Positions 9,153-45,556 of a stretch of 58,958 nucleotides of DNA are shown here, in pieces. Below the pieces are notes generated by a model. That model saw only the letters and a program-made list of their open reading frames with translations. It had not been told where the DNA came from and ran no database searches. Position numbers and translations under genes: made by a program. The stretch is from Macrostomum lignano. Its lineage: Eukaryota. Position 1 is the stretch's first letter. Every line of letters begins with the position of its first letter. The stretch lies in contig NIVC01001933.1 in NCBI GenBank assembly GCA_002269645.1, forward strand, positions 1 through 58,958. The letters run 5' to 3'.

Positions 9153-9232
9153 ACTTTTTTATACTTAGGAAATTGTATTTGGAAGGAAGGTAGGAAAAAG
9201 AAGGTATAAGATATTATATTCATTTCTTTATA

Positions 9233-9959
9233 GAAGTGCTTATCCCCACAGTCCCATGCCAATAGTTCCAATTTTATCCACACAGATCTATGTCAATAAT
9301 TTTCAGCTTATCCCCATGGTAGCTTATTGAAATAGCTGCTACCATTCAAGTCTATAAGCCATGTTAATAATTCCAATTTTATCCACATAGATCCATGTCA
9401 ATAATTTCCAGCTTATCCTTATGGCAGCTTATTGGAATAAAGAACCTTGAAATGAATATGTTCAAAAACTATCTTTTTGTTTTCACTATTTTATAAATCT
9501 TCTAAATAAACTATATATATTGAATACTAAATAGCATCAAGTAAGTACTTTGTTAAAACTTTTTGTCATTAAAAGGGTTAATTTTAAATATTTGCTTAGC
9601 TGCTGGCTTTAGGCCTACTTAGAACAACCAAACATCTCAAGGATTGAGAGAAATAAGACTTGCAAAATTCAACTATATTATGGGCCTAATAATATTTTCA
9701 TTAATAATAAAAATATCAATTTAACATCAATACACAAAACTAAACACAAACAATTGAACAATCTTAGCCATGAGGATAAGCTGAAAATTATGGTTAAAAT
9801 GTGGTTAAAATTGTAATTATTGACATGGCTTATATAGACTTGAATGGTGACAGCTATTATTTTAAATAAGCTGCTATGGGGATAAGCTAGAAATTATTGA
9901 CATGGATCTGTGGATAAAATTGGAATTATCAGCACGGGACTGTGGGGATAAGCACTTCC
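9233..9959. mobile_element. MITE with long TIRs and a 9-10 bp TSD (Mutator/MULE-like)
   Basis: Arms starting GAAGTGCTTATCCCCACAGTCCC and ending GGGACTGTGGGGATAAGCACTTC are complementary over >130 bp. TTTCTTTATA is duplicated on both flanks (9223-9232 and 9960-9969). Confidence 0.75.
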
Positions 9960-11812: not shown

Positions 11813-12307
11813 GGCATAACTATGGTTTCGTTCATTATATTATTTCTTGTTTTGAATTTGTTCCAGCTTACATAGAAATGGCTGGACGACCATCGGCTCC
11901 TCTTCCTACAAATGCACTGCCAAATCACACATCTGTAAACCACTGGCTCCATTTTGTGGACCCCCAGGACCCAACGGTTCATACGAACACTATTGAGGGA
12001 ACATGTGCGCATTGCAAGGCAAAGTTTCACAACATGTATGGGACGAGTGATGGTCTATTTGAAACTCATCTGCAGGAATTTCTGTGGCGCCGTCTAAATC
12101 CACAAAATGTGTTTGGCAACTTTCTCTACTGGGTGTCACACTATTATCCCGTCTAATTATCTTTCTCGTGACTTCAAACTCGAATTTGAACTTTTTTGGT
12201 GGTGGGTCATCTTTTTTAACTTAAAATAATATAACGAGCCATTTCTACGTGCGCTGGAACAAATTCCACACAAGAAATAATATAACGAACACAACCATAG
12301 TTATGCC
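11813..12307 (+). mobile_element. Internally deleted Merlin (IS1016/ISXO2-like) DNA transposon
   Basis: ~70-bp TIRs GGCATAACTATGG.../...CCATAGTTATGCC. The internal reading frame to 12156 encodes HTSVNHWLHFVDPQDPTVHTNTIEG...LFETHLQEFLWRR, the C-terminal part of a Merlin/ISXO2 DDE transposase. Confidence 0.85.
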
Positions 12308-12928
12308 TTTTTTGTATTGGTAATAATTAATGATACATTTAGCTTTATATTAAATGAGCTTATAAAAACTAGTCCTAGTCCTATTAAATAGTAGATTAAG
12401 CATAATGATTAGGCTTTGATATACTTTTTAATAAATTAATATAACAGAAAAGTCTTTTGTATTTTGCAATTGTTTTAAGGTGCCAATAAAAAAAACTAAA
12501 AATTTGTATATTTTAGTAAATTGCCATTTCTATATTTTGGCCTAAGGCTAAGCCTCTTATTTTATATACTAAAATTTTCAACAAAAAAAATAATAGAGGT
12601 TATATATACATTTTAGTATTTAAATATTTAGTAACTAACAACCCTTTATTCTTTGGCCTAAAGGAAAAATCATAATTATTTGTTTTTGTTACAATCTAAA
12701 AACTTTTATTCAGGCAAAATTCATATTAAAAAATACATAATAGTTTAAAAGTTGATATATTTAATTACTTAATAAAATAAGGATATTGTTATTGAATATT
12801 TTATATTAAATTTTTGTTATTATAGGTTAGGTCAAGTAACCATGATAAAACATAAGTCTAACATTTTCATTTAGTTTCAGGAATTTACAGTTTCATCTAA
12901 GCTAGAATTCAAATAGATTTTGTCTGAC

Positions 12929-15900: not shown

Positions 15901-18480
15901 GATTCATGCAGTTAACGGCTGATGATATTTAATTAAGCAAACAATGCTGCAAAGCTCATTAATTTCACTCCTATCCGCTCCATCCTTCACTCGTCCCTCA
16001 ACCGGAAAGCAGACCGGAGTAAGTGCATTCGCCGTTGCATTTAACCAATCTTGAAAATATTTTTGTCATAATCCGGTGCCGCATATGCTACTGCTCACTC
16101 CTCTATCTTAGTAGTATAGTTAAACTAACTAGCCTAAAATGTTTGTGTCACTTAGCTAGTTAGTTTTCCTTGTGCATAAATATTTGATCTGACGCGCTTG
16201 TTTGTTTAAACGGATTGCATGCTTGCAGTTTTGGCGCCAATTTGAACCAAACAGTTCAGTTCTATCTAAGCTACCTTGATGTTAACTCTTGAAAATTAGA
16301 ACTAAAATTGTTATTAATCTAAACTTAGATTAAATTTAGAATTCTGAATGAATATCTATAGTAACCGACAGGTCCAACTGCTTCTGTTACTCTCACAGTT
16401 GGCGTGCTGCTCAACTTATTTGCTTTTTTATATTAATGCTATCGATTCTGGTGCATAAGCATTGCCTGTCTGTTATTGCGCTTGAGCTTACCCACACCAA
16501 GGACTTTTAGAGGCCTGGACTGGACGCAGACCCACACCTTCACTAAATGCTTACGCCCACACCTTTTCTAAATGTTTACCCCTGCACCAAGGACCTCTAG
16601 AAACCTGGACTGGAAGCAAAATCCACACCTTCGCTAAATGTTTACCCCTGCACCAAGGACCTCTAGAAACCTGGACTGGAAGCAAAATCCACACCTTCGC
16701 TAAATGTTTACCCCTGCACCAAGGACCTCTAGAAACCTGGACTGGAAGCAAAATCCACACCTTCGCTAAATGTTTACCCCTGCACCAAGGACCTCTAGAA
16801 ACCTGGACTGGAAACAGAATCCACACTTTCGCTAAATGTTTACCCCTGCACCAAGGACCTCTAGAAACCTGGACTGGAAACAGAATCCACACTTTCGCTA
16901 AATGTTTACCCCTGCACCAAGGACCTCTAGAAACCTGGACTGGAAACAGAATCCACACCTTCGCTAAATGTTTACCCCTGCACCAAGGACTCTAGAAACC
17001 TGGACTGGAAGCAGACCCACACCTTCGCTAAATGTTTACCCCTGCACCAAGGACCTCTAGAAACCTGGACTGGAAGCAGACCCATATCTATGTTAAATGT
17101 CTATCTCTGCGCCAGGGATCTCTAGAAACCTGTACAGGAAACAGACCCAAACCTTCGCTAAATACTTACCTGCTGAGAGACTGTCCCTGGTTCAGACATC
17201 CAGAGGTCCCTGGTCCGCATGGGAAGATTTTGATTCAGTTTTTCTGTCATCACGGTTTGCGCCACTGCCGCTGCCTCCAGCATCCCGCTGTTTACTTTGC
17301 CTTCCTGCCAATCTGTCTGACCCACCGATCGCATCTCAAGCCCCGATACGCATTGAATTAACTCAGCTGATGCCTCTGGATTTTGACTTGTAGGCGGCAC
17401 TCGCTGCCCAAGACCAGCGTGATTCCCCTGCCGCTGTGGAAGGCCAACCCGGAGACCAACCCGGAGGCGATCTTTAAAAAGGGCGAGGTGAGGTTCCGGA
17501 TTTGAATTTTTGGAATTGATTTTGCGCTATACTTGTGTTTAACTCGTCCTTGAGAATCATCCCAATCCGCCTCCGAGAATCACCCAAATCCGCCCCTGAG
17601 AATCACCAGATGCGCCCCTGAGAATCACCAGATCCGCCCCTGAGAATCACCAGATGCGCCCCTGAGAATCATCCCAATCCGCCCCTGAGAATCACCAGAT
17701 GCGCCCCTGAGAATCACCAGATCCGCCCCTGAGAATCACCAGATGCGCCCCTGAGAATCATCCCAATCCGCCCCTGAGAATCACCAGATGCGCCCCTGAG
17801 AATCACCAGATCCGCCCCTGAGAATCACCAGATGCGCCCCTGAGAATCATTCCAATCCGCCCCTGAGAATCATCCCAATCCGCCCCTGAGAATCACCAGA
17901 TCCGCCCCTGAGAATCACCAGATCCGCCTCTGAAAATCACCAGATCCGCCCCTGAGAATCATCCCAATCCGCCCCTGAGAATCACCCCAATCCGCCCGTT
18001 AAGAATCGCCAAATCCGCCCCTGAGAATCAACAAATCCGTCCCTGAGAATCATCAAATCCTCCCCTGAGAATCGCCAAATCCGCCCCTGAGAATCATCCC
18101 AATCCGCCCCTGAGAATCGCCAAATCCGCCCCTGAGAATCATCCCAATCCGCCCCTGAGAATCATCTCAATCCGCCCCTGAGAATCGCCAAATCCGCCCC
18201 TGAGAATCGCCAAATCCGCCCCTGAGAATCATCCCAATCCGCCCTGAGAATCGCCAAATCCGCCCCTGAGAATCGCCCACTCCCGCCGCGCCAGATGGTG
18301 CTAGCCCTGTACCCGCAGACCACCTGCTTCTACCGCGCCCTGGTGGACGAGCCGCCGACCTCGGTGCACGAAGACTACCAGCTGTTCTTCGAGGACCCGT
18401 CTTACCCTGAAGGCATCGCGCCCTCGCTGGCTGTGCCGCAGCGCTACGTGATTCCCCTGCGCGATGAGCAGAACGCCTGA
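12929..18480 (+). CDS. SGF29: SAGA-associated factor 29; exons 12929-13000, 13085-13160, 13521-13593, 14616-14960, 17394-17487, 18295-18480
   Basis: Continuous spliced frame: MAKQKEELLQDKLAQLHSLLKKAV...RRGVLMSLLQEAARTLPLWVG...PPLCG...WILAEV...EEGKERH...WKANPETNPEAIF...VLALYPQTTCFYRAL...FED.SY (tandem Tudor domain). All junctions are GT-AG and in phase. Confidence 0.95.
13195..13465. repeat. ~40-bp tandem repeat x~6 in SGF29 intron 2
   Basis: CTGAGTGCTCAAGTGTCAGACTCCTGTGTGACCAGTTCTG units. Confidence 0.9.
14096..14436 (-). mobile_element. tRNA-derived SINE (family copy 1)
   Basis: Minus-strand head GGGGGCCGTAGCCGAGCGG (A box)...GGCTCGATTCC (B box); body shares blocks with the copy at 50884; A-rich tail. 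Confidence 0.7.
15085..15815. repeat. 31-bp tandem repeat x~23 in SGF29 intron 4
   Basis: CCCTGTCCCGTTTCCATGCTTTATCTGGCAC units. Confidence 0.95.
16500..17170. repeat. 66-bp tandem repeat x~10 in SGF29 intron 4
   Basis: CCACACCTTCGCTAAATGTTTACCCCTGCACCAAGGACCTCTAGAAACCTGGACTGGA... units; 22-aa periodicity in the spurious ORF. Confidence 0.95.
17550..18280. repeat. 22-23-bp tandem repeat filling most of SGF29 intron 5
   Basis: GAGAATCACCAGATCCGCCCCT and GAGAATCATCCCAATCCGCCCCT variants; the array ends ~14 nt before the acceptor. Confidence 0.95.
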
Positions 18481-18711
18481 CCTTTGCTGTCCGATCGGAC
18501 TGCTATGAGCATTTTGTGTGGCATTGAGGACCGCTTGCTTCACACATTTTGTTGCGTTTTGTATTTAAATAATACATCAACTATTTTCTAGCACTTAACT
18601 ACAGTCAGTGTATGATACTCATAATGCAATAATTCAACTCCAATTTGAGATCTGGTTGCCGAGTACTTTTGTTTAATTTATCTTTCTGAACTGCAATTTT
18701 GGACCTCTCAC

Positions 18712-20795
18712 TTTTGACTGCCTCTCACTCTTGACTACCTCTCACTTTTGACTGCCTCTCACTCTTGACTACCTCTCACTCTTGACTACCTCTCACTCTT
18801 GACTACCTCTCACTCTTGACTACCTCTCACTCTTGACTACCTCTCACTCTTGACTACCTCTCTCACTCTTGACTACCTCTCACTCTTGACTACCTCTCTC
18901 ACTCTTGACTACCTCTCACTCTTGACTACCTCTCACTCTTGACTACCTCTCACTCTTGACTACCTCTCACTCTTGACTACCTCTCTCACTCTTGACTACC
19001 TCTCACTCTTGACTACCTCTCTCACTCTTGACTACCTCTCACTCTTGACTACCTCTCACTCTTGACTACCTCTCACTCTTGACTACCTCTCACTCTTGAC
19101 TACCTCTCACTCTTGACTACCTCTCTCACTCTTGACTACCTCTCACTCTTGACTACCTCTCTCACTCTTGACTACCTCTCACTCTTGACTACCTCTCACT
19201 CTTGACTACCTCTCTCACTCTTGACTACCTCTTACTCTTGACTACCTCTCTCACTCTTGACTACCTCTCACTCTTGACTACCTCTCACACTCTTGACTAC
19301 CTCTCACTCTTGACTACCTCTCACTCTTGACTACCTCTCTCACTCTTGACTACCTCTCACTCTTGACTACCTCTCACTCTTGACTACCTCTCACTCTTGA
19401 CTACCTCTCACTCTTGACTACCTCTCTCACTCTTGACTACCTCTCACACTCTTGACTACCTCTCACACTCTTGACTACCTCTCACACTCTTGACTGACTC
19501 TCTCACTCTTGACTACCTCTCACTCTTGACTACCTCTCACTCTTGACTACCTCTCACTCTTGACTACCTCTCACTCTTGACTACCTCTCTCACTCTTGAC
19601 TACCTCTTACTCTTGACTACCTCTCTCACTCTTGACTACCTCTTGACTTCCTCTCACACTCTTGACTTCCTCTCACTCTTGACTACCTCTCACTCTTGAC
19701 TACCTCTCACTCTTGACTTCCTCTCTCACTCTTGACTACCTCTCACTCTTGACTTCCTCTCTCACTCTTGACTGACTCTCACTCTTGACTACCTCTCACT
19801 CTTGACTTCCTCTCACACTCTTGACTACCTCTCACACTCTTGACTACCTCTCTCACTCTTGACTACCTCTTGACTTCCTCTCACTCTTGACTACCTCTCA
19901 CTCTTGACTTCCTCTCTCACTCTTGACTACCTCTCACACTCTTGACTACCTCTCTCACTCTTGACTACCTCTCTCACTCTTGACTACCTCTCTCACTCTT
20001 GACTACCTCTCTCACTCTTGACTACCTCTCTCACTCTTGACTACCTCTCTCACTCTTGACTACCTCTCTCACTCTTGACTACCTCTCTCACTCTTGACTA
20101 CCTCTCTCACTCTTGACTACCTCTCTCACTCTTGACTACCTCTCACACTCTTGACTACCTCTCACTCTTGACTTCCTCTCACTCTTGACTACCTCTCACT
20201 CTTGACTACCTCTCACTCTTGACTACCTCTCACTCTTGACTACCTCTCACTCTTGACTACCTCTCACTCTTGACTACCTCTCACTCTTGACTACCTCTCT
20301 CACTCTTGACTACCTCTCACACTCTTGACTACCTCTCACTCTTGACTTCCTCTCACTCTTGACTACCTCTCACTCTTGACTACCTCTCACTCTTGACTAC
20401 CTCTCACTCTTGACTACCTCTCACTCTTGACTACCTCTCACTCTTGACTACCTCTCACTCTTGACTACCTCTCTCACTCTTGACTACCTCTCACACTCTT
20501 GACTACCTCTCACACTCTTGACTGACTCTCTCACTCTTGACTACCTCTCACTCTTGACTACCTCTCACTCTTGACTAGCTCTCACTCTTGACTACCTCTC
20601 ACTCTTGACTACCTCTCACTCTTGACTACCTCTCTCACTCTTGACTACCTCTCACTCTTGACTACCTCTCACACTCTTGACTACCTCTCACACTCTTGAC
20701 TGACTCTCTCACTCTTGACTAGCTCTCACTCTTGACTACCTCTCACTCTTGACTAGCTCTCACTCTTGACTACCTCTCACTCTTGACTACCTCTT
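18712..20795. repeat. ~2.1-kb 17/19-bp tandem array
   Basis: (CT)n-CACTCTTGACTAC units downstream of SGF29. Confidence 0.95.
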
Positions 20796-21344
20796 AATCT
20801 TGGCTAACTTATCCTTGTCGACCCTCTTAGTCTCCATCCTAGCAAATTCACCTCGGAGCTACCTATCTCTCAGTCATCCTCCCAGCTTCCTCACGCCCCC
20901 AACCTGCATCTGCATTCATCCGCCGTCTCAGTCTGTCAAAAACGTTCGAGCAATGGCTGTACTCAGCCAAAAGTATCCGATATTAGTTGTGAGAATTCGA
21001 AATTCATATTAAAGAAAAAACGGCTAAGTTAGACGAGAATAATCTTGAGCGTAGAGAAACAGCCATCAATGCAAATTGCTTTGGCATGGCTACTGCAGAA
21101 CAGAAATACTCGTCTAGGTTCTGCAAACAGATTAGAATGCGACTGCTGTTGCCGCTAATGAAGTTGTGTGGGCTGTAGCGATGCCGTGAGTGTGTACACT
21201 AGACATGGTCTGCACTGCTGTGCAGGTAAGTTATTACTATAGTAGTCTAGGTTATCCAGATTTAATAGCCGTTTAGAGAAACGTACATGTATTCATCTCT
21301 ATCTTAGTGCAAAGTCCGCCATAAAGCAATAATGTTTACGTGTA

Positions 21345-21520
21345 GGGGGTAGTGCAGCTCATGGCTGACTCTCACGCCATGGTCCCTGGTTCGATTCCGT
21401 GCGATTGGAAAGTCTGGGCCGCTGTCCACTGAGCGCGTGTCTGAGTACAGTATTGGCGCGCTTGTGTGTGCTCATGCAGGAATCGTGGGTCGATTTTGCC
21501 AGGGTGCCTATAATCATTAG
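21345..21520 (+). mobile_element. tRNA-derived SINE (degenerate copy)
   Basis: GGGGGTAGTGCAGCTC...GGTTCGATTCC; shares GGGCCGCTGT.CACT with the 14.1-14.4 kb copy. Confidence 0.5.
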
Positions 21521-22509
21521 AGTTAGGGTTACACTATATGCACTCTACATTATATATTAAAATACATACATGTGGTTACAATTTTTATTACAATCAGAAA
21601 GCAAGACTGGTGAGGAGAGTGGAGAGCTGTGGCTATGAGTTGGATTGAAGCCGCCACTTGCTGATCGCTGCTGGTTTCGCGGCGGGAATTTTACCGTCTA
21701 TAAATTGGAATTTTCGCGATTGATTTTAGAACAATCGCCCCTAAACTGGACTCGACTCAGTGCTGGTTGAGTAATCTGATCTCCAAGACAAGCTTATTCA
21801 TTTCCTACTTCCTACTTGGAATCGAGCACCAAGTTCAATTTTTAAGTCTCAAAGTCACCTCAAAGGCTATTGATTTGCTCCTTAAAGAAGCTGGTCGCAT
21901 TTCTGGCAAGACTTCCTGGGCAGCAATCAGCCATGACCCATCGTCAAGCCTTTGACATCTGACTCTGCCCAGTGCCCAGGTCTGGAAAATCTCTCGTCAA
22001 TAAAAAATGATTCTGAATAAACCAGCTTTGAAATGAAGAAAGTCAATAAAGATATGAGGCCAATTTTTGCTGACGACACCGGAGCTTGAGCACGTTTTTG
22101 TGCCCCGTGGTGACAACTTATATGAGCACAGTTATAACCCAAAGTTTGATTGCTGACCCCTGGCTGCGCTGTTGCCCAGCCAGACGCCTCAATGAACGAA
22201 GAAGTGACTTGGCGCACCGCGGATTGACTGTCGCGGCTTAGAAGCATCGGAAGGGGGCTGCAGCCGACTGGAGCCGAAGCCGAATTTTCCTAACTGCCAA
22301 CTCGCTTCATTTGATTGGCCAAGCCAAGTTCGAGCCAATGACGGCAGCCCCAGCCGAGCAGAATCGCAGGGTTTGAAGGCCCTTGGCGTACGGCTTTGCC
22401 TCCGCTATTCGTTCCGTTCACCATGAATTGCCGCCCCCTTTAGCCATATAACTGAGACAGGATGGGCCCGATTGTTGACAGCTTGACTTGGAGGCCAACT
22501 TGATTGACA

Positions 22510-22609
22510 ATACAGACACGGACAGACAGACACGGACGAACAGACACAGACAGGCAGACACAGACAAACAGATACAGACAGGCAGACACGGACAGACAGA
22601 CACAGACAG
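22510..22609. repeat. ACAG-type microsatellite just upstream of the first identified channel exon
   Basis: Direct reading. Confidence 0.85.
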
Positions 22610-22613
22610 GCCC

Positions 22614-25600
22614 ATGGGCTCGCCAGCCAGCGAGAATCTGACCGTCTGCTATTTCGGTCACCCGCCGTTCTCGGACACCGTGGCCGGCCAGCTCCGAGGC
22701 GTGTTCTGGGACCTGGCCCGGGCCGGCCTGCAGCAGTGCGGCGAGCCGCTGGACTTCCGCTACCGCGCCTTCGCCAGCGAGAGCCACCTGCTGAGCGACG
22801 GGGTCACCCGGGGCTGCAATGTCAGCCTGCCGGTGGCGAAGGCGCCGCTGTTTGGCCTGCTGAGCGAGCACAAGTTCCTGCCGGTGGTGACCACTCCGGG
22901 TGAGACCGGGGCGGAGAGCTTGCAAAAGTGTCTGAGACTGCGAATCTGTCAATCCGCCTCTGAGAACCATCTCAATTCGCTCCAAGAATCACCTCAATCC
23001 GCCCCTAAGCATCACCTCGATCCGCCCCTTAGAACCCCCCCCCCAATCCATCACTGAGAATCGTCCCAATCCATCACTGAGAATCGCCCCAATCCGTCAC
23101 TGAGAATCGCCCCAATCCATCAGTGAGAATCGCCCTCAATCCATCACTGAGAATCGCCCCCAATCCATCACTGAGAATCGCCCCAATCCATCAGTGAGAA
23201 TCGCCCCAATCCATCACTGAGAATCGCCCTCAATCCATCACTGAGAATCACCCTCAATCCATCACTGAGAATCGCCCCAATCCATCAGTGAGAATCGCCC
23301 TCAATCCATCACTGAGAATCGCCCCAATCCATCACTGAGAATCGCCCTCAATCCATCACTGAGAATCGCCCCCAACCCATCACTGAGAATCGCCCTAATC
23401 CATCAGTGAGAATCGCCCCCAATCCATCACTGAGAATCGCCCTCAATCCATCCCTGAGAATCGCCCCCAATCCATCCCTGACAATTGCCCTTTGCGAAGT
23501 TCACACCTGACACCTGCGCAGAAGACATGACGCCGCAGGTGGCGGGTGCAGAACTTCGGTGCCCCAGTTTTGTACCAAGTATGTCCAAAACTTGAAAAAC
23601 AAATTCAGGAATTCAGAAAAAACAGCCAGTAGATCTTATTTTCAAATAGTTTTCAAAATTGAAACAAGGAAAAACTGATTCAGAATGTGCGCAGCAAAAA
23701 ACGCAACAGTTTATTGCTTTTCGAAATTCCCCCGCTGACAGACAGTCGGAATTTCCCCGAAGCGGGTCATAAATCCACGATAGAATTGAATTATTTCCGA
23801 GTTCATACCGAGAATCGATATTTGAAACCCCCGATGCACCCCACACGCCAGTTCGAACCCGTCTGAGGCCTTGAAATCGGATCTCTTGAGCACCCGTTTT
23901 TGGATGGGAAATTTATTTAATTTATGCACGAGTTGGGACTCTCAATTTTCAAGCGACCCAATTATCGAGACAAGTTGGCATATTTCATTTTTCCACTATT
24001 TTTATTGCATATTTTATATACTTTAGCCCTACTGTCAATAAAGAATTTCCATCAGCATTCCTGATTGGCTGATGCAGAGAGCAGCTGAAATGCGCTTTAC
24101 TTGACCGCTTAGTCAGAAAGGTCCGTTTGAAAATTTGAATTTCAAATTAAAAAGTTATTGCACACGCGTTTGAAATGAGAATTCGAACCATTGAGGTCAG
24201 TCTGTATTGTTGCTGCCATGCTCAACTGGAATGAGGTGACGGATTTCTGTTGCATTGAATGTACTCTGATGTACACGGATGTACACTGGTGTGCATTGAA
24301 TGCACTCTGATGTACACTGCTTTACACCGCTGTACACTGCTGTACACTGCTGGTATGCACAGATGTACACTGCTGTACACTGCTGTACACTGCTGTACAC
24401 TGCTGGTATGCACAGATGTACACTGCTGTACACTGCTGTACACTGCTGTACACTGCTGGTATGCACAGATGTACACTGCTGTACACTGCTGTACACTGCT
24501 GTACACTGCTGGTATGCACAGATGTACACTGCTGTACACTGCTGTACACTGCTGGTATGCACAGATGTACACTGCTGTACACTGCTGTTATGCACAGATG
24601 TGTAACGTGCGGTGTTTGGCAGTGTAAAAATCAACGAAGGCCCCGTGGGGCAGTGATGGCTATACATGTATTTATGCGAGTCAACGATGTACATAGAGAG
24701 AGCGAACGTACATTACAATTATTCAGCAAAATATTTGTCAATACGATACCAGTTCAATGACTGCCAATAAGGCAAGGAATAAAACCATTACAGATGTACA
24801 CTGCTGTACACTGCTGTACACTGCTGGTATGCACAGATGTACACTGCTGTACACTGCTGGTATGCACGGATGTACACTGCTGTACACTGCTGGTATGCAC
24901 AGATGTACACTGCTGTACACTGCTGGTATGCACAGATGTACACTGCTGTACACTGCTGGTATGCACAGATGTACACTGCTGGTGTCAACAATGCCATACA
25001 AAAATCTGTAGGAAGTTCAGCACGCAAAAGCAAAAACACACGCTGCCCGCAGCGGAGCGAAATGTTTTTGCAGCTTCTCCCCACCGAGTGCACACTGCTT
25101 GTTATATTTTGCTGGCAATTTCAGTTTACCCCAGCTATTGCAGAAAGCTTAAACTCCTCTCCATAAAGCTGATGTCGCAGCTGAAAATGTACTTTTAGAC
25201 TAGTTCGAATACGCATCATTCGATTTTTAGATTTATGAGCAGATGGTGTAGCGTTGAGTTTTGTGGCCCACAGCGTGACCATTCTGATTTTAATACTAAT
25301 TTGCGTCTTTCTAAGAAACAAATGCTCACGATTTCTTTGAGACCAAATGACATGTCAGTTAGTTTTAACCCATATTAACCCTAACCCTAGCCCTCAGGTA
25401 TCCCTGATGAGACAAAGATTATTCATACACCCTTACTCACTCTCCTTGCCAGTTGGGACCCGGTAGTCGTAATCCGCCGGTACTGCACTTCATTCTCTCC
25501 TACCTAACCCTAACCCTAGCCCTAACCCTAGCCCTAACCCTAACCCTAACCCTAAACCTAGGCTAGCGACAAATCATTTTTATCATAGTGGATTCACTGA

Positions 25601-28600
25601 GTAGGCTATCATACGAGCGTAGATCGATCTTAGATGCCCTTATTAGCTGATAAATTGCATTTTTTCATCGCTACACTCAAGTTTGCCCAAGGGCCTTCAT
25701 TCCCAACGTCATCAGCTGGCTTTTGTCCAATGCACCAGGCCTGAGGCAGTCGCAGACCCACAGTTATACCTGTACATGTACCTATCCATTTTTCGGCTTT
25801 CCTCCCCTCCCGCAATGCAGGCTTGAAGCCCTTAAAGAAGAATCTGGTTTGCGAGCTTGGATACTAAGATGAAGCTGGCGCAAACCAAATTATGGGTTCA
25901 ATCGAAGCGGAGGCTTGACAAATTAATAAGATGAGGAACCAGACCGGTGTCTGCGAATGAGGGTAAGAATTGGTGCTCCAGGCTCTGGCACACGCCCGCC
26001 TTGGTCGCAGTTATCCGCGTGTCCTTAACTTTGTTTAGAGGAGAAACACCGGGGCAGAGCCGTCTTGCGACGACTTTCCCCGGGTCCCGGCGCTGCCCCA
26101 GTTATCGGCCGTTCGCTAGGAAGCTGCTTGGGCAAATATTTAAAGTGCGAGCAGCAATGCAACGAGACAATGGGGCCCATTGTGCGCTCAAGTCTGACTG
26201 GGGCGATTCAATTCTGTCACTCCTCATCATTTCCATCGATCCGGCACTCCAGGTTTCACTCTGTGTGCATAGCGATTTAGAAGCCTCAATGCCATTCTCA
26301 GTGTCGCCCTTTGTGTCACTCTCTCTGTCACTATTGATGTCACTCTCTATGTCACTATTGATGTCACTCTGTCTCACTATTGATGTCACTCTCTGTGTCT
26401 CTATTGATGTCACTCTCTATGTCACTATTGATGTCACTCTCTGTCTCACTATTGATGTCACTCTCTGTGTCTCTATTGATGTCACTCTCTGTCTCACTAT
26501 TGATGTCACTCTCTGTGTCTCTATTGATGTCACTCTCTATGTCACTATTGATGTCACTCTCTGTCTCACTATTGATGTCACTCTCTGTGTCTCTATTGAT
26601 GTCACTCTCTATGTCACTATTAATGTCACTCTCTGTCTCACTACTGATGTCACTCTCTGTCTCACTATTGATGTCACTCTCTGTCTCACTATTGATGTCA
26701 CTCTCTGTCTCACTACTGATGTCACTCTCTGTCTCACTACTGATGTCACTCTCTGTCTCACTATTGATGTCACTCTCTGTCTCACTATTGATGTCACTCT
26801 CTGTCTCACTATTGATGTCACTCTCTTTGTCACTATTTATGTCACTCTGTGTCTCACTATTTATGTCACTCTCTGTGTCACTATCGATTTCACTCTCTGT
26901 GTCACTATCGATATCACTCTCTGTGTAACTATTGATGTCACTCTCTGTGTGTGTCAGTTTTAAGTGTCTCTTCACATGTCGCTACCAGTGCAGTACGAAG
27001 TACCATTGTCAATGTCACTCTCAATGTCACTCTCTTATATCTGAATCAACATCAGCCCTCCCCAGAGTATTCGCTAATTCCACTGCGCACCTCACCCACC
27101 GCCGCAGGCGCAGTGTGGCTGGACCCAACCATCCGGCCGCACCAGTCCGGCCTTTCGCAGCTGAACTTCGTGGTTCACGCCTGGCCACTGCTGGTCATCA
27201 TCCTGGTGTCCTGCGCCTACGCCGGGGTCATCGCCTGGCTCATGGTCTGGACTGGCGCCTGCTGACTGTTAGATAGGCTTGCTGACTGTTAGATAGGCTT
27301 GCTGACTGCTAGAAAAACTTATTACCTGTTAGACAGGAGAATTACCTGTTCAGGAGTATTACCTGTTAGAGACAGGAGTATTACCTGTTAGACAGAACTA
27401 TTACCTGTTAGACAGGAGTATTACCTGCTAGACAGGCTTATTTCATATTAGACAGGCGTATTACCTGTTAGACACGCTCATCAACTGTTAGACACGCTTA
27501 TTACCTGTTAGACAGAAGTATTACCTGTTGGACAGAACTATTACCTGTTAGACAGAACTATTACCTGTTAGACAGAAGTATTACCTGTTGGACAGAACTA
27601 TTACCTGTTAGACAGAACTATTACCTGTTAGACAGAACTATTACCTGTTAGACAGGCTTATTACCTGTTAGACAGGCTTATCAACTGTTAGACACGCTTA
27701 TTACCTGTTAGACAGAAGTATTACCTGTTAGACAGAAGTATTACCTGTTAGACAGGCTTATCACCTGTTAGACAGAAGTATTACCTGTTAGACAGGCTTA
27801 TCACCTGTTAGACAGAAGTATTACCTGTTAGACAGAAGTATTACCTGTTAGACAGAACTATTACCTGTTAGACAGAAGTATTACCTGTTAGACAGGCTTA
27901 TCACCTGTTAGACAGAAGTATTACCTGTTAGACGGAAGTATTACCTGTTAGACACGCTTATAAACTGTTAGAACAGCTTACTATAGAATACCTATTGGAC
28001 AGGTTTATAACCTGCTACAAGGACTGATTAGCATTCAGACAGACATGAAACAGCGTCATCTCCCAGCCAATTTCCGCAAGCCACTGGGGCTCCCTCTTCA
28101 TCAAACGCAGCCTCTCGCATCCCCTCTCCCCTCCCCCGTCTTGGATTTCAGGAGCGGCTGAAAAATCCCCAGGAATTTCCCAGACCCTTCCTGCGCGGCT
28201 TCTGGGAAGGCTGCTGGTGGGCCTTCATCACCATGACAACCGTGGGGTGAGTTTAGAAATATCGTTTTGCAAAGCATTCTGGCATTCTTTTTGCTGTGCC
28301 TGGCAACCCCGCTTGAAGCACCGCTTGAACCGGGGATGAATGCCCTCTGCAGCGCCTGCGGGCTGCCTGCGCGCTGGCGTGACTTGCTGCTGCTATTTTC
28401 TAGCGAAAATTCATTCGCTGGGGTGAATTGCTGCTGCTATTTTCTAGCGAAAATTCATTCAGTCCGAGGTTTCTTCTTTCCCTCATTTGGATTCGTGAGC
28501 GTCACACTTCTTCTCTTCACCTCTATTCTCAGTATCTTCTCTACTCTCTCTGTTTACTCTCATTGTCTACTCTCCCTGTCTACTCTCCCTGTCTACTCTC

Positions 28601-31600
28601 CCTGTCTACTCTCCCTGTCTACTCTCCCTGTCTACTCTCTCTGTCAGTCTACTCTCCCTGTCAACTCTCTCTGTTCGTCTACTATATCTGTCTACTATTT
28701 CCGTCTACTCTCTATCTACTCTCTCTGTCTACTCTCTCTGTCTACTCTCTCTGTCTACTCTCATTATCTACTCTCCTTGTCTACTCTCTCTGTCTACTCT
28801 CTCTGTCTACTCTCCCTACCTTTTCCCTCTCCCTGTCTACTCTGTATACTCTCATTGTCTACTCCCCCTGTCAATTCTCTCTGTCCGTCATCTATCTCTG
28901 TCTACTTTCTATCTACTCTATCTGTCTACTCTACCTATTCTTCCTACCTACTATTCCTGCCCCGTACAAGCAGCTCGCAGGCGGCAGTGCAGCGCAGAAT
29001 CTGCAGCGGCCGGTGCGCAGCCCAAAACTGTGACGGATCCCATGGGATAATGAAGGGTGCAAGGGAATCCCAGGCCCATTCTTCACTCGTTTAACCGCGG
29101 GGTCGCGTGGAGAAAGTTTTCTATGCCGGGGTCACCGGGGGCTCCGCAGCTGCCCGAGGCAGCCGAAGATGATTTAAGGTCAGCTGCTGGCAGCCACCAC
29201 CCACTACGGCAAAGTTTTTCCCCAGGCACAGAGGGGTGCAACTGCCAGCTGCCTGATCAATCTGATGACTCCTCGAGTTCCGAGCTTCCCTGCTAATTGT
29301 CTGCCGCCTTTTTGCTCAGTTTGCTTAACCTAGAAATCGAATGAATGATATTTTGTCTGTGGAATCTGAAATTCCATCTCGATGGAATCCCAAATTGGAA
29401 AATCTCCCTTAGTATACCAAATTACTTTCGTGGGAAATATCCCACAGCAGCCTGAGATCCCCAATCGGGAAATATCCCACAGCAGCCTGAGATCCCCAAT
29501 CGGGAAATATCCCATAGCAACCCGAGATCCCCAATCGGGAAATATCCCATAGCAACCTGAGATCCCCAATCGGGAAATATCCCATAGCAACCCGAGATCC
29601 CCAATCGGGAAATATCCCATAGCAACCTGAGATCCCCAATCGGGAAATATCCCATAGCAACCCGAGATCCCCAATCGGGAAGTATCCCATAGCAACCCGA
29701 GATCCCCAATCGGGAAATATCCCATAGCAACCTGAGATCCCCAATCGGGAAATATCCCATAGCAACCCGAGATCCCCAATCGGGAAATATCCCATAGCAA
29801 CCTGAGATCCCCAATCGGGAAATATCCCATAGCAACCCGAGATCCCCAATCGGGAAATATCCCATAGCAACCTGAGATCCCCAATCGGGAAATATCCCAT
29901 AGCAACCCGAGATCCCCAATCGGGAAATATCCCATAGCAACCCGAGATCCCGAAGCGGGAAATATCCCATAGCAACCCGAGATCCCGAAGCGGGAAATAT
30001 CCCATAGCAACCCGAGATCCCCAAGCGGGAAATATCCCATAGCAACCCGAGATCCCGAAGCGGGAAATATCCCATAGCAACCCGAGATCCCCAATCGGGA
30101 AATATCCCATAGCAACCCGAGATCCCCAAAGCAGACATCCGATTTCGAACCCCGCAGCTACGGCGACCGCTCGCCGAAGACCATCTGCGGCAGGCTGTTC
30201 GCCTTCCTGTGGATCAGCTTCGGCCTGGTGATCACCTCCATGTTCACCGCTGGCATCACCACCGCGCTCGGCCAGAGCTCGCAGTCGTTTGACAACTCCA
30301 AACTGTTCCAGGCCAATGTTAGTTTCCGTGTTCTCATTGTCCTGTTCTTCATTTTGAAAATCTAAATATTTTCTAAATTCTAAATATTCTTTTACAAAGG
30401 CCTTCGAATCTTCTCCTCAATTCCTCAAAAGTACTGAGTAGGGCACTTCTTTGGAATATTTTGACGCACGGATTCCCCATTAATCGTGCATAAAGGGATT
30501 CCTAGCTAACCTTGTCGAAGAGATTCCCAAATACTCTTGCAAAACGGATTCCCCATTAACCAAGGGATTACCAACTGATCTTGCAAAAGGGATTCCCCAT
30601 TAACTTTTCGAAGGGCTTCCCTACTAATCCTTTGAAAGGAATTTCACATTAACCTTTTCGAAGGGATTCCTTACTACTATTGCGAAAGGGATTCTCCATC
30701 CTTGTCGAAGGGATTCCCATTAACCAAGGAATTCCCCACTACTTTTGTCAGAGGGATTCCCCACTGCTCTAGCGAAATGGATTCCCATTGTGAAGCGGTT
30801 CCTGTTGAAGGGATTCCCGGTTAACGTTTTAAAGGGATTTCCTACTACTCTTGTGAAAGGGATTACATAACTTTTGCGAAGGCAATTCCCAAATCATATT
30901 GTCGAAGGAATTCCCAAATCATATTGACGTGGGAATTCCCTAATCATATTGTCGAGGGAATTCCCAAATCATATTGTTGAAGGGATTCCCCATCAATATC
31001 GATAATTTAGACGCGCAAAGAACCCAGCATAGCAACCAATTCCTGGAAGCCCTGAATCCGTGTCGGGGCAAACTGAAAGATCGCACAGCACTGCCGGCCT
31101 CTCCAACCCCTCCCTTCACTGGCCCCGGCCGGCACCTGCAGATGACGGTGATGAACGGCTCGTTCGAGGAGACACTGGTGTACGAAGTCGGCTCGAACCC
31201 CATCGGTAAGCCGCTGCACCGGTAGACTTTGGTATTTGGCTTGTCGGGGCCATCAATTTAGCAGACAGGCTCCGCAGTCGGATTGTAAAAGCAGCAAATT
31301 TTTCTCTGCTAAACTCGCCCTGACTGTCGGGCCAGTCCTTGATTTGCTTCTGCGGTCTGGGAAACATAAAAGATTAGACAAATAAAATTACTGCGCAAAA
31401 ACTGCGAGACAGGAGGCGGGCAGGCTCTGCTGAAGCATCTGCCCGAGTCTGGGAGGCAGAGAGCTCGGGAAAATGGCGAGAAAAAGAAGACAGTTCATTG
31501 AAAAACAGAGACACTAAGAAATGCTGAGTGAGATACTGGGATACTGAGTGAGATACTGGGATACTGAGTGAGATACTGAGTGAGATACTGGGATACTGAG

Positions 31601-34600
31601 TGAGATACTGGGATACTGAGTGAGATACTGAGTGAGATACTGGGATACTGAGTGAGATACTGAGTGAGATACCGAGTGAGATGCTGAGTGTGATACTGAG
31701 TGAAATACCGAATGAAAACTGGGTGAGATACTGAGTGAGACGCCGAGTTAGACACTGAGGTAAATACTGAGATACTGAGTAAGATAGTGAGTGAGATACT
31801 GAGATACTGAGGGAGATACTGAGTGTGGTACTGAGTGAAAACCGAGTGAAAACTGAGTGAGATACTGAATGAGATGAGTGAGATACTGAGTGAGAACTGA
31901 ATGAGATGAGGGAGATACTGAGTGAGAACTGAGTGAGAACTGAATGAGATGAGGGAGAGACTGAGTGAGAACTGAATGAGAACTGAATGAGAACTGAATG
32001 AGATACTGAGTGAGACACTGAGTGAGAAACCGAGTGAGATACTGAGTGAGAAACCGAGTGAGATACTGAGTGAGAAACCGAGTGAGATACTGAGTGAGAA
32101 ACCGAGTGAGATACTGAATGAGATACTGAGATATTTCGGATTTTCTAAGAATTTCTAAGAAACATTTTGAAATGAGGATTATCTAAGAACGAAGCACTCC
32201 CCTCCTACTTTGAGTCGTCCATTTCCCCGGACTGACCCGCCCCGACCCCTTAACCCAGCGGTGAACTCCTTGGACGAGCTGTTCGGCCGCCAGGCCTGGC
32301 AGCACTCGGGCAGCGAACCGCCGCAGGACCACCCAGCCTCATCACCGCCGGCCTCGGCCAATGCCAGTGACGCTGCCGGTGTTTCCCATGGCAACAGGGC
32401 CGCCCGTCACTACGGCGCCCTGATCGAGCACTTCATGTACCTGCACATGCGCCAGGAGCACCCGCTGCAGGTGGCCGGCGTCAAGCTGCAGATGGTGCTG
32501 AAGAGGCCGTCTGTGCGGGGGCTGCTGACGAGGCTGCGACCCAGCCTCACCGGCTGCCTCATCAACTGGCTGGTGACCCGGCAGCACAGGGTGTTGGCGG
32601 ACCTGGTAGGGCTGCAACATCAGGGCAGCGACGCGGTGAGTCAGGGGCTAACTAAGCTACATAGGCTTGCCTTGTCTACCTTGTCTACTTTGGGTACCTT
32701 TTCTACCGTGTCTACCTTTTTTGTACTTTGGCTACCTTGTCTACTCTGGCTACCATGACTACTTTGGTTGGCTACCTTGTCTACCTTGTCTACTTCGTCT
32801 AATATGGCTACCTTGTCTACTTTGGCTACCTTGGCTACTTTGGTTGGCTACCTTGGCTACTTTGGCTACTTTGGCTACCTTGGCTACCCTGGCTACCTTG
32901 ACTACCTTGTCTACTTTGGCTACCTTGGCTACTTTGACTACCTTGGCTACTTTGACTACCTTGGCTACCTTGGCTACCTTGGCTACTTTGACTATCTTGG
33001 CTACTTTGACTACCTTGTCTACTTTGGCTACCTGAACTACCCTGGCTACCCTGGCTCGAAAGCTACATAATAGGCTATCTAGTCTAACTTGGAATTCCGT
33101 GTCCATCTCAGTTGCCTTGACCATACCTGGTCTACTTAGCAGCTGCTTCTACCCTAGCAGCCTCATCTCCCATGCCCACCTTAGCTTTTTAGCTACCGAG
33201 GCTACCTTAGCTTTCATGTTTAGCTTGGCAACTCAACTTATTGAATGAAGCCGCAAAATTCGGTTGGTCACTGGCTTCTCAACCCAATCAACAGTGAGGC
33301 TGGAGCAGTTTTTGTTTATTCCGGTCATTCACTGCTCGCCTTCGAAGCGGAAATTGCTGCGAAAGCAACAGATGTTACAGCCTTAACTCAGCGCCAGCCT
33401 CCATCTCATGCTTCATCCGGAGCCTGAGCAGGATTAAATAGATTAAGAAATGAGCTGCTCGTCAATGCAAAAAAGTGTTGCCCCCGAGACGAAAAGGATC
33501 CGTGATGTTTGCTGAGCGCGGAGACTTAGGACAGCCACTTGGGCACGAACCGGCTCTGAGGCCTCCTCTGCGTGCGACTTTGCCATCCCCTCATTAATCT
33601 GCTTTACTAATTTATCCTACATTAGCATCACGGCACCCGGCCTCTGTCACTGCTCCTCTGATTCCTGTCACTCCGATTCTTAGTCACTCCTCTGATTCCT
33701 GTCACTCCGATTCTTAGTCACTCCTCTGATTCCTGTCACTCCGATTCTTAGTCACTCCTCTGATTCCTGTCACTCCGATTCTTAGTCACTCCTCTGATTC
33801 CTGTCACTCCGATTCCTGTCACTCCGATTCCTGTCACTCCGATTCCTGTCACTCCGATTCCTGTCACTCCGATTCCTGTCACTCCGATTCCTGTCACTCC
33901 GATTCCTGTCACTCCGATTCCTGTCACTCCGATTCCTGTCACTCCGATTCCTGTCACTCCTCTGATTCCTGTCACTCCGATTCCTGTCACTCCGATTCTT
34001 AGTCACTCCTCTGATTCCTGTCACTCCGATTCCTGTCACTCCGATTCCTGTCACTCCGATTCCTGTCACTCCTCTGATTCCTGTCACTCCGATTCTTAGT
34101 CACTCCTCTGATTCCTGTCACTCCGATTCCTGTCACTCCGATTCCTGTCACTCCTCTGATTCCTGTCACTCCGATTCCTGTCACTCCTCTGATTCCTGTC
34201 ACTCCGATTCCTGTCACTCCGATTCCTGTCACTCCGATTCCTGTCACTCCGATTCCTGTCACTCCGATTCCTGTCACTCCGATTCCTGTCACTCCGATTC
34301 CGCCTCCTCAGCCGTACGACGACCCGAAGTCGCCGGAGGGCATCGCCAAGTCGCTGTTCTTCACCAACCAGCTGCACCTGCTGGTGCTGGCGTTCGCCTT
34401 CGCCGTGCTCTTCGCCGCGCTGCTGTGCTGGGAGAGATTTTGGTGGGCACCGAGGAACCCCGACTACCAGTGTGAGCAACCGGGTTTACTCAAAATTTAC
34501 TCAGAATTCAATGGGAAGAAGCTTTCATATGAAGGATTTGATCTCTTGACAGCTTCATATCGTCATTCGTTAATCGATAGAAAGACAATATCGAAATAAA

Positions 34601-36078
34601 TATATAATAAATAACTAATAAAAAAAAATATATATATAACGAAAATTGTTACTGCTTTTGATGAAGCTAGCGAGACCCAATGTTCATCTTTTGATATGTC
34701 TTACCTTTCATCATACGAGTATAGCTCTATTGATAATTATAGAACCTTTCGTTTTGAAAATTATGTTAATTTTATATCCTACGTAATTATGTCCTGTGCC
34801 TAAAAACCATTATATTGGCACGGCTCGGCTCATTGGTTTTATAGGCTTTTCAGGCACAGGTTTCAGGCACTTCTAGGTTTTTCAGGCACAGGACCTGTGC
34901 AGTTGTACGAAGGATATATAATTATCATAGAATCCAAATTTTCTCAACAAAAAACTCCATGTATCAATAGAGCCATTAGAAAGACAAAATATATAAAATG
35001 ATCAACATTGGGTCTCCCTAGCTCCCATCGAAAGCAATAACAATTTTTTTTTGCTGAAAAAAATTAAAATGCTCCCATATTCGTAATCCGTATTTTTTGG
35101 TGTAGCCGGCCTCCTAAAATTTTTGGTGGGGAGGACAAAGCCAAGAATTCTGCATATTGTTCGTGTACATGACTAAATTCCTACAAGTACATTATTTTCA
35201 TAATGGTGCTGTCTGCGATTATTTTGGCGCCGCAGGCGCTCATTTTAGCGCTGCAGGCACTCATTTTGGCGCTGCAGGCACTCATTTTAGCGCCGTAGGC
35301 ACTCATTTTAGCGCTGCAGGCACTCATTTTAGCGCTGCAGGCACTCATTTTGGCGCCGTAGGCTCTCATTTTAGCGCTGCAGGCACTCATTTTAGCACCG
35401 TAGGCACTCATTTTAGCACCGTAGGCACTCATTTTAGCACCGTAGGCACTCATTTTAGCGCCGTAGGCACTCATTTTAGCGCCGTAGGCACTCATTTTAG
35501 CGCCGTAGGCACTCATTTTAGCACCGTAGGCACTCATTTTAGCACCGTAGGCACTCATTTTAGCGCCACAGGCACTCATTTTAGCACCGTAGGCACTCAT
35601 TTTAGCGCCACAGGCACCATTTTTTGTTGCCATGAAGCAAAATTATTGATTTCCATAACAGGTCAACAAAGGTGGGGTGGGGGGACAATGCATTAGCATG
35701 TCTCCCCCATAGCTCTTACTGGGGGGACATGCCCCCCTGTCCCCCCGGTGGTGACGCCTCTGACTTGAGTAGTCTTCGTAGGAAAATAGTGGCCCTTAGA
35801 AGGGCCGTTTTAGAGCTTCAAGTGACAATTACACGCAACTGCAGCAGCCAACTCCAATCCGCAGTCATCGAGCACAACTGGAAATACGAGCGGCAGAAGA
35901 AGGAGGCCGAGTTCACCCAGCAGCTGGACTTCAAGTCCTACTACAAAAGAAGAAAATCTTCCAACGGCTCCTTGAGCCCGCCGGCAGCAGCGGCAGCAGC
36001 GGCAGCAGCAGCGGCCGGCAGCCGGAGCGGCGGCAGCGACGGAAGCTTCCGGCAGCAGCAGCAGCTTCGCTTTCTTCC

Positions 36079-36124
<46 letters not shown>

Positions 36125-36316
36125 GGTATTTCAGAAATTTCCGAAAGCAATTCGCCGTTGATTCGAGGCGCGGCCAACGGCGGCTGCCTTCGAAGTTCGC
36201 CAGCGACACCGTCGGCGGTCGGCCGGCGTTCTCAAGCGACCAATTTCTCGCCGAGGCCGGCCGGAGTCGAGTTCGAGGACTCCGCAGGCAGCTGCAAGTC
36301 GGTCGGGTTCGTGTGA
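22614..36316 (+). CDS. iGluR-like ligand-gated channel with a K+ channel selectivity filter (GluR0/AvGluR1-like); exons 22614-22899, 27108-27244, 28152-28246, 30158-30317, 31142-31205, 32259-32635, 34312-34471, 35865-36316; true N-terminus uncertain
   Basis: Spliced ORF of 1731 nt (576 aa + stop), all junctions GT-AG and in phase. PBP2-like S1 (LTVCYFGHPPFSDTVAGQLRGVFWDL), M1 (WPLLVIILVSCAYAGVIAWL), pore (GFWEGCWWAFITMTTVG|YGDRSP), M3 (RLFAFLWISFGLVITSMFTAGITTAL), S2 (NSLDELF...GALIEHF), M4 (LHLLVLAFAFAVLFAALLCW). Confidence 0.8.
22950..23480. repeat. 23-24-bp tandem repeat (GAGAATCGCCCCAATCCATCACT)
   Basis: Direct reading; related to the 17550-18280 array. Confidence 0.9.
24255..24985. repeat. 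Two blocks of a compound GTACACTGCT-based repeat (24255-24600, 24790-24985)
   Basis: Direct reading. Confidence 0.9.
25372..25562. repeat. Interstitial telomere-like (CCCTAA/CCCTAG)n tracts
   Basis: AACCCTAACCCTAGCCC at ~25378 and ~9 hexamers at 25503-25560. Confidence 0.8.
26310..26950. repeat. 24-bp tandem repeat (TATTGATGTCACTCTCTGTCTCAC)
   Basis: Direct reading; source of the SETESDIN ORF. Confidence 0.95.
27260..27975. repeat. 20-bp tandem repeat (TTACCTGTTAGACAGAAGTA)
   Basis: Direct reading; intron 2 of the channel gene. Confidence 0.95.
28525..28950. repeat. Degenerate CTACTCTCTCTGT repeat
   Basis: Direct reading; intron 3 of the channel gene. Confidence 0.85.
29430..30130. repeat. 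35-bp tandem repeat x~20
   Basis: CCCAATCGGGAAATATCCCATAGCAACCCGAGATC units ending ~27 nt before the exon 4 acceptor. Confidence 0.95.
30470..30990. repeat. Degenerate GAAGGGATTCCC-core repeat
   Basis: Recurrent GGATTCCCCATT/GAAGGGATTCCC motif in intron 4. Confidence 0.7.
31520..32130. repeat. ~12-bp repeat (GAGTGAGATACT)
   Basis: Direct reading; intron 5. Confidence 0.9.
32665..33060. repeat. 9-bp repeat (CTACCTTGG/CTACTTTGG)
   Basis: Direct reading; intron 6. Confidence 0.9.
33655..34300. repeat. 15-bp repeat (ATTCCTGTCACTCCG)
   Basis: Direct reading; ends ~11 nt before the exon 7 acceptor. Confidence 0.95.
34642..35047. mobile_element. Diverged foldback / MITE-like element
   Basis: AAAATTGTTACTGCTTTTGATGAAGCTAGCGAGACCCAATGTT (from 34642) is the imperfect reverse complement of AACATTGGGTCTCCCTAGCTCCCATCGAAAGCAATAACAATTTT (~35004-35047). 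Confidence 0.65.
35220..35620. repeat. 21-bp repeat (GGCACTCATTTTAGCGCCGTA) x~18
   Basis: Direct reading; intron 7. Confidence 0.95.

Positions 36317-39434: not shown

Positions 39435-45556
<6,122 letters not shown>

Follow-up and report, generated by a model that had tools for sequence, protein, structure and literature searches.

A flatworm gene for a putative ligand-gated K+ channel of the ionotropic glutamate receptor superfamily, belonging to an unnamed metazoan family

The window analysed here is a stretch of 58,958 nt from the flatworm Macrostomum lignano (assembly GCA_002269645.1, contig NIVC01001933.1, positions 1 to 58,958 of the forward strand), and the gene in question occupies positions 22614-36316 on its + strand. 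An earlier note, made from the letters alone, had described the product as a channel with the architecture of the ionotropic glutamate receptors (iGluRs) and a K+ selectivity filter. According to our analyses, the product is probably a subunit of a tetrameric iGluR-superfamily channel, in which a GluR0-like, two-lobed ligand-binding domain (LBD) composed of the segments S1 and S2 would gate a K+-selective pore, with a eukaryote-type M4 segment and without an amino-terminal domain (ATD). In the proposed mechanism, the LBD would face the outside and the P-loop would dip into the membrane from the cytoplasm, an arrangement known from GluR0 and the iGluRs. A small extracellular ligand would then close the clamshell and pull M3 open, and the open channel would pass K+ selectively, by which the cell would be hyperpolarised, that is, inhibited.

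The pore of the spliced product reads CWWAFITMTTVGYGD and M3 reads SMFTAGITTAL. The intact filter TMTTVGYGD, and MFTAGITTAL in place of the SYTANLAAFL of iGluRs, had both been put forward in the earlier note and are read directly from the spliced sequence. The segment of pore helix and filter, WWAFITMTTVGYGD, comprises the full K+-channel signature, with its aromatic WW cuff and the Asp that follows GYG, and is invariant in the family, the filter motif being unchanged in 76 of the 78 members inspected. When the window protein was searched by sequence against the PDB, it matched only K+ channels, over the pore (KvLm at 1.2e-10, then KcsA and Kv), and the family profile behaved alike. We favour K+ selectivity because the full signature is family-invariant and GluR0, the closest characterised relative, is K+-selective; GluR0 is also inverted in the membrane (PMC12332018, PMC13099474). 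Among the Pfam models that the earlier note had named, Ion_trans_2 (2.5e-15) and Lig_chan (PF00060; 34.3 bits, gathering cut-off 30.8) matched and SBP_bac_3 did not; neither this LBD model nor Lig_chan-Glu_bd matched the window protein or its metazoan relatives. Hydropathy indicates three transmembrane segments, M1 (aa 123-141), M3 (aa 186-210) and M4 (aa 394-412). Lys and Arg cluster on the linkers M1-P and P-M3 and behind M4, in keeping with the GluR0/iGluR topology, and relatives have signal peptides, or CUB/Ig domains that are extracellular, ahead of S1, which we count in favour of an extracellular S1. The order S1-M1-pore-M3-S2-M4-tail, as originally proposed, is borne out in agreement by the alignment, the hydropathy, the Lig_chan match above the cut-off, and the AlphaFold/Foldseek results on a homologue given below.

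At the profile level, homology of S1/S2 to the ligand-binding domain of GluR0 is supported. An LBD-only family profile (S1-GT-S2 of 19 members) was searched against the PDB, and its best matches were the Synechocystis GluR0 LBD structures 1IIT and 1II5 (E 5e-7, nearly full length), followed by the Nostoc GluR0 homologue 2PYY (5e-6) and then by amino-acid-binding proteins, with no eukaryotic iGluR LBD chain of the PDB at E<=10. In hhalign comparisons, the family S2 aligned to the bacterial GluR0-like S2 with a probability of 96.6% (E 5e-10), and the family S1 to the bacterial S1 weakly when taken alone (E 0.012), in collinear order; the S1 homology is thus convincing only within the match of the full-LBD profile to GluR0. 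S1 and S2 of the window protein scored 17.9 and 14.4 bits, respectively, against family hidden Markov models (HMMs) built without flatworms, versus 2.3 and 5.6 bits for the best of 500 shuffles. Meanwhile, the Saccoglossus homologue P0073 (~30% identical to the window protein, aligned end to end) was modelled by AlphaFold2 from a 91-sequence alignment, and gave a pLDDT of 88 and a pTM of 0.75. The top Foldseek matches of this model in the PDB were AMPA/NMDA chains comprising the LBD and the transmembrane domain (TMD), at E 2e-13 and over ~430 of 440 columns including M4. The window protein aligns to all secondary-structure elements of the P0073 model and keeps the family-conserved residues. 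The PBP2 fold expected of S1/S2 therefore has family-level support, from the match of the P0073 model to the iGluR LBD-TMD and from that of the profile to the GluR0 LBD.

The residues of the putative binding pocket were read from the alignment only, with no coordinates. At the position of the GluR0 Asp that binds the ligand amine, 73 of 77 members have Asp or Glu, which is E304 in the window protein; the lobe-2 Ser/Thr, which corresponds to the Ser of NGS in the window protein, is kept in 63 of 77 members; and the P-[YF] motif, found in 70 of 71 members, is kept as PPF. Because the pocket acid, the lobe-2 Ser/Thr and P-[YF] are conserved, ligand gating is favoured.

The gene consists of eight exons on the + strand, which splice in phase to 1731 nt, i.e. 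576 codons and a stop. All coordinates, junctions and the length given in the earlier note held on re-splicing. All seven junctions are GT..AG, with two weak donor sites (GTCTGG and GTTAGT), and the GC content at third codon positions (GC3) of the exons is 0.85, far above chance expectation, versus a GC content of 0.42-0.50 in the seven introns. Every intron is filled with minisatellite arrays (period 9-94), in keeping with the long repeat-rich introns noticed before. A tblastn search with relatives recovered all exons of the gene and no other match in the window. In addition, two M. lignano UniProt fragments read across the junctions, P0002 as S1|M1|pore|M3 and P0010 as M3|S2a|S2b|M4|tail; no recorded genomic locus was found for P0010. 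The features of the gene are as follows.

22614-22899, + strand: exon 1, from the start codon into S1 (aa 1-95 and 1 further nt), with the NLTVCYFGHPPF strand/PP[FY] motif
27108-27244, + strand: exon 2, end of S1, pre-M1 and M1 (27188-27244, aa 123-141)
28152-28246, + strand: exon 3, 95 nt, linker between M1 and P, followed by the pore helix (28188-28232) and, from 28230, the first filter half, TMTTVG
30158-30317, + strand: exon 4, rest of the Gly173 codon, YGD (ending at 30167), and M3 (30195-30269), which holds the motif SMFTAGITTAL in the gate region
31142-31205, + strand: exon 5, 64 nt, start of S2, MTVMNGSFEETLVYEVGSNPI; matches M. lignano P0010
32259-32635, + strand: exon 6, bulk of S2, interrupted at 32297-32395 by a low-complexity insert and carrying GALIEHFMY (32414-32440), the conserved motif of the acidic residue
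34312-34471, + strand: exon 7, 160 nt, S2-M4 linker and M4 (34372-34428, aa 394-412)
35865-36316, + strand: exon 8, cytoplasmic tail with the conserved FIEHNWKYERQKKEAEF segment, poly-Ala (35978-36019), poly-Gln (36080-36121) and the stop codon (36314-36316)
22900-27107, 27245-28151, 28247-30157, 30318-31141, 31206-32258, 32636-34311 and 34472-35864, + strand: the seven introns, 824-4208 nt

The start Met of exon 1 is equivalent to the start Met of P0002, and the tail segment NWKY[DE]RQKKEAEF is common to exon 8 and P0010. Exon 1 opens directly in S1, the upstream gene is a separate SGF29 gene, and no coding exon lies between the end of that gene (~18477) and 22614, so that the absence of an ATD, claimed from the letters, stands. 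A (CAGA)n-type array with a period of 14/28 occupies 22506-22611. It extends to within 3 nt of the start codon, so that the channel gene would have an unusual promoter and 5' untranslated region.

The codon of Gly173 in the filter is split GG|C across 28246|30158 by a phase-2 intron, so TMTTVGYGD spans the junction. To compare gene structures, the splice sites of the Acropora digitifera gene for the family member P0004 (locus L003, DF970805.1) were mapped exactly. Its six introns all match window introns 2-7 (of seven) in alignment position and phase (0, 2, 0, 1, 0, 1). Intron columns 406, 439, 502 and 525 are identical in the window and Acropora genes, and the others lie at 721 versus 722 and 780 versus 785, both in variable linkers; three exons have the same lengths in the two genes (95, 64 and 160 nt). 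The phase-0 intron after exon 2 is common to both, and the phase-1 intron in S2 after exon 5 is common to the window, Acropora and Dimorphilus. The phase-2 intron within the filter glycine codon is also present in the Acropora gene and is therefore ancient, which supports the 28246|30158 join on which the earlier note depended. Both weak donors lie at intron positions conserved with Acropora, and the S1|pre-M1 intron, specific to the window, is the only one without an Acropora counterpart. As judged from these alignments, the gene structure is the strongest support for the gene model. Moreover, the shared introns and the Neighbor-Joining (NJ) trees described below indicate vertical descent, at least from the cnidarian-bilaterian ancestor. 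A recent horizontal transfer from bacteria was considered and rejected, since the introns have kept their positions and the tree agrees with that of the species. On the Acropora scaffold, a second member of the channel family (DF970805.1, L003, 10321-10979, - strand) adjoins the P0004 gene, which suggests that the family has been tandemly duplicated in the coral.

An exhaustive HMM search yielded at least 458 cluster representatives of the family at E<=1e-30, and a profile search gave about 60 full-length named relatives, all labelled "uncharacterized" or "potassium channel domain-containing". The family is one of marine invertebrates, with members in Cnidaria (Nematostella, Acropora, Porites, Actinia, Xenia, Hydractinia, Clytia and Rhopilema), Hemichordata (Saccoglossus, Ptychodera and Glandiceps), Annelida (Dimorphilus and Owenia) and Platyhelminthes (M. 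lignano); examples are Nematostella LOC116614398, Acropora LOC107338448, Saccoglossus LOC102804213, Dimorphilus DgyrCDS12770 and the M. lignano A0A1I8J... fragments. The family is marked by [FC]WWAF[VI][TS]MTTVGYGD, by NGSxE and GxLxDxY in S2, and by WE after M4, all of which are present in the window protein, the second S2 motif having Glu in place of Asp and Phe in place of Tyr. The window protein aligns end to end with the metazoan family and has the same filter. Its closest relatives are M. lignano proteins (~44% identity), and the best match of the neighbouring MAP2K4-like gene is likewise an M. lignano protein (59%), both in accord with the assignment to an apparent flatworm. The flatworm members have a single Cys in S1 where most relatives have CC, and their tail carries poly-Ala and poly-Gln tracts.

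After the metazoan family, the next-best matches are bacterial GluR0-like proteins, which end after S2, without M4, and share the M3 motif FTAxxTTAL with the family. NJ bootstrap trees were built with each of two M. lignano fragments separately, because the fragments do not overlap. The window protein grouped with each fragment at 100/100, bacterial and metazoan groups were split at 100/100, and a bilaterian clade was recovered at 53-58/100. A grouping with Kir, K2P or Kv channels, which would have contradicted the earlier note, was not seen; the window protein sits in a large metazoan clade, with the bacterial GluR0-like proteins separate. A full-text literature search found no description of the metazoan family, which is an absence within the searchable literature and not proof, and the papers on iGluR phylogeny and evolution that were checked do not mention it. 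The clade had been called poorly characterised, and that description fits an unnamed metazoan family with members annotated "uncharacterized". The kinship with GluR0 and AvGluR1 proposed at the same time stood in part: M4 does occur together with the K+ signature in a eukaryote, but the clade appears nearer to bacterial GluR0 than to AvGluR1-type eukaryotic iGluRs.

The cnidarian members P0064, P0067-P0069, P0071-P0077, P0079, P0081, P0083 and P0084 have a different extracellular module, CUB and Ig domains, preceding S1 at the position of the iGluR ATD. In P0381 (4084 aa), P0404, P0407 and P0415, the LBD-pore modules of the family are located at the C-terminal end of proteins of 2400-4000 aa, which points either to fusions of gene models or to channels with a giant ectodomain.

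Several observations weigh against a ligand-gated K+ receptor in the flatworm. The fold evidence comes from the P0073 homologue and not from the window protein, and the window LBD, when searched alone against the PDB, matched no solved LBD and only a chance-level ubiquitin-domain protein. The N-terminus, MGSPASENLTV, is without a hydrophobic stretch and hence without a signal peptide, as in M. lignano P0002, and a scan of the + strand at 18480-22613 for a signal-peptide exon revealed no ATG-plus-hydrophobic open reading frame upstream of exon 1. The insert in S2 (33 aa, low complexity) is flatworm-specific. The Arg of the GluR0 T-P-E-R loop is present in 33 of 73 relatives and is missing from the window loop, VAKAPLFGLLSEHK. 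Moreover, AvGluR1 passes Na+ with a TXVGYG signature (PMC3483616). The missing signal peptide, the low-complexity insert, the tail tracts and an LBD too divergent to find GluR0 alone keep alive the alternative that the flatworm LBD is vestigial or repurposed, the product being a leak K+ channel, an otherwise-gated K+ channel, or a silent or modulatory subunit, and the absent carboxylate-binding Arg points in the same direction. We consider this alternative unlikely. Very divergent as the window LBD is, its S1 and S2 are still recognisable as those of the family, the pocket acid E304 and the NGS and PPF motifs are retained, the window protein and the M. lignano fragments show strong conservation in the S2 core, and the charge distribution favours the receptor topology. 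A classical amino-acid ligand is disfavoured, because the T-P-E-R arginine is missing in the window and present in fewer than half of the relatives. With the amine-binding acid kept and the carboxylate-binding arginine not, the ligand may be something other than an alpha-amino acid.

A further alternative keeps the same protein and the same gating and holds that the channel is a non-selective cation channel despite its GYG, and hence excitatory. The Na+ permeability of AvGluR1 speaks for it, as does the setting of the filter, a scaffold of iGluR type that is inverted and has M4 added. However, the whole of WWAFITMTTVGYGD matches that of bona fide K+ channels, the only channels matched in the PDB; the near-invariance of the filter (76/78) implies strong selection on the motif; and GluR0, the closest characterised relative by LBD and M3 motif, is K+-selective. 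We therefore judge a non-selective channel improbable. A pseudogene, an unexpressed relic or a model with an incomplete 5' end would be consistent with the lack of a matching transcript or protein in a collection of 5.8 billion proteins, with the missing signal peptide and with the weak donors. However, the 1731 nt are open over eight exons with a high GC3, all family-invariant residues are kept, both weak donors sit at positions conserved in Acropora, and the start Met is common to M. lignano, so we give this explanation very little weight; on balance, the locus is best taken as a functional flatworm gene for one subunit of the ligand-gated K+ channel proposed above, a reading that we hold with moderate confidence. 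The single-sequence searches, which match only K+ channels and only over the pore, would suit a conventional K+ channel of the Kir, K2P, Kv or KcsA-like kind, flanked by chance by S1/S2-like sequence. This reading is ruled out, to a degree that leaves it barely worth considering, by the homology of S2 and of the whole LBD to GluR0 and by the near full-length Foldseek match to iGluR LBD-TMD chains including M4; the Lig_chan score above the cut-off, the 100/100 split between the bacterial GluR0-like proteins and the family, and the FTAxxTTAL motif of M3 in both argue the same way.

In animals, Cl- channels are held responsible for fast inhibition. Relatives of glutamate receptors with a K+ signature have been presented as bacterial GluR0 plus one rotifer oddity, AvGluR1 (PMC12332018, PMC3483616). 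The family described here, which has at least 458 cluster representatives, combines a K+ filter with an iGluR scaffold and M4, and has a gene structure conserved between coral and flatworm. It is a tentative proposal that cnidarians and bilaterians share ancient, widespread and hitherto undescribed ligand-gated inhibitory K+ receptors of the fast type, descended from GluR0, bearing M4 and without an ATD, of which the flatworm gene would be one member and for which the ligand is perhaps not an alpha-amino acid. If this is true, the family would add a new class to the inhibitory ionotropic receptors. It would also represent a living intermediate between GluR0 and modern iGluRs, in which the timing of the gain of M4 and of the loss of selectivity could be tested directly, and would offer a compact natural template for chemogenetic silencing tools.

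Besides the channel gene, the window holds the following features, and no RNA family was found in it with Rfam.

657-2450, - strand: MAP2K4-like dual-specificity kinase exons; best match M. lignano BOX15_Mlig028471g1, 59% identity, E 1.5e-59 versus 7e-44 for the next
4169-5002, - strand: GC3-rich open reading frame with a weak match to the Shugoshin C-terminus (1.9e-4, below the cut-off)
6000-14000: AT-rich block between genes, GC 0.30-0.38 versus ~0.5 elsewhere
14653-18477, + strand: SGF29 tudor-domain gene (Pfam SGF29_Tudor, 2e-32), directly upstream of the channel gene and on the same strand
41000-41430, + frames: repeated unit that gave chance tblastn matches, probably a minisatellite in an intron of a kinase gene
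41519-44264, - strand: protein-kinase exons, CaM-kinase-like in appearance
48509-51467, - strand: polycystin-type cation channel (PKD_channel 4.6e-18, Polycystin_dom 1.6e-17), a 482-aa single exon

The SGF29 gene stands apart from the channel gene and does not encode an ATD for it. The polycystin-type gene is a second ion-channel gene in the window.

Compared with the known systems, the window protein resembles the classical K+ channels (KcsA, KvLm and Shaker/Kv) in its pore helix and filter, the WW cuff and the Asp after GYG, and differs from them in an LBD split around the pore, an extra M4 and a presumably inverted orientation. With the canonical iGluRs (AMPA, kainate, NMDA, delta, epsilon and lambda), it shares the LBD-TMD fold, the order S1-M1-P-M3-S2-M4 and the Lig_chan match. 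However, those receptors have an ATD, a Q/R/N site and SYTANLAAFL, whereas the window protein has a K+ filter and MFTAGITTAL and no ATD. With none of these three features and no LBD sequence match to them, it does not belong to the canonical animal iGluRs.

The rotifer AvGluR1 combines the TXVGYG signature with M4 in a eukaryotic subunit of the iGluR superfamily (PMC12332018, PMC3483616), and has been described as a receptor with the complete architecture of eukaryotic iGluRs (PMC12332018). It binds amino acids and is poorly selective, whereas the window protein is without an ATD and without the carboxylate-binding Arg. The full architecture of AvGluR1 presumably includes an ATD. By this comparison, in which AvGluR1 enters by description only, the window protein does not look AvGluR1-type, its LBD appearing to be GluR0-type. 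Within the unnamed metazoan family, of which the window protein is a member, the flatworm proteins are without a signal peptide, unlike their relatives, and some cnidarian ones have CUB and Ig domains.

The closest system is GluR0 (Slr1257 of Synechocystis PCC 6803) with the bacterial GluR0-like proteins, which have in common with the window protein the TTVGYGD-type filter, the FTAxITTAL of M3 and the absence of an ATD. By sequence, the family profile also finds its best PDB match in the LBD of GluR0, and the inverted topology is presumably common to both (PMC13099474). However, GluR0-like proteins (P0023, P0108 and others) end after S2 and have no M4, whereas the window protein has M4 and a cytoplasmic tail of 160 aa. 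Furthermore, the window gene is eukaryotic and contains seven introns, unlike GluR0, and the arginine of the GluR0 T-P-E-R loop is not conserved. The window protein would thus work like GluR0 with an added M4, yet by its M4, its introns and the 100/100 split it stands outside the prokaryotic GluR0 group.

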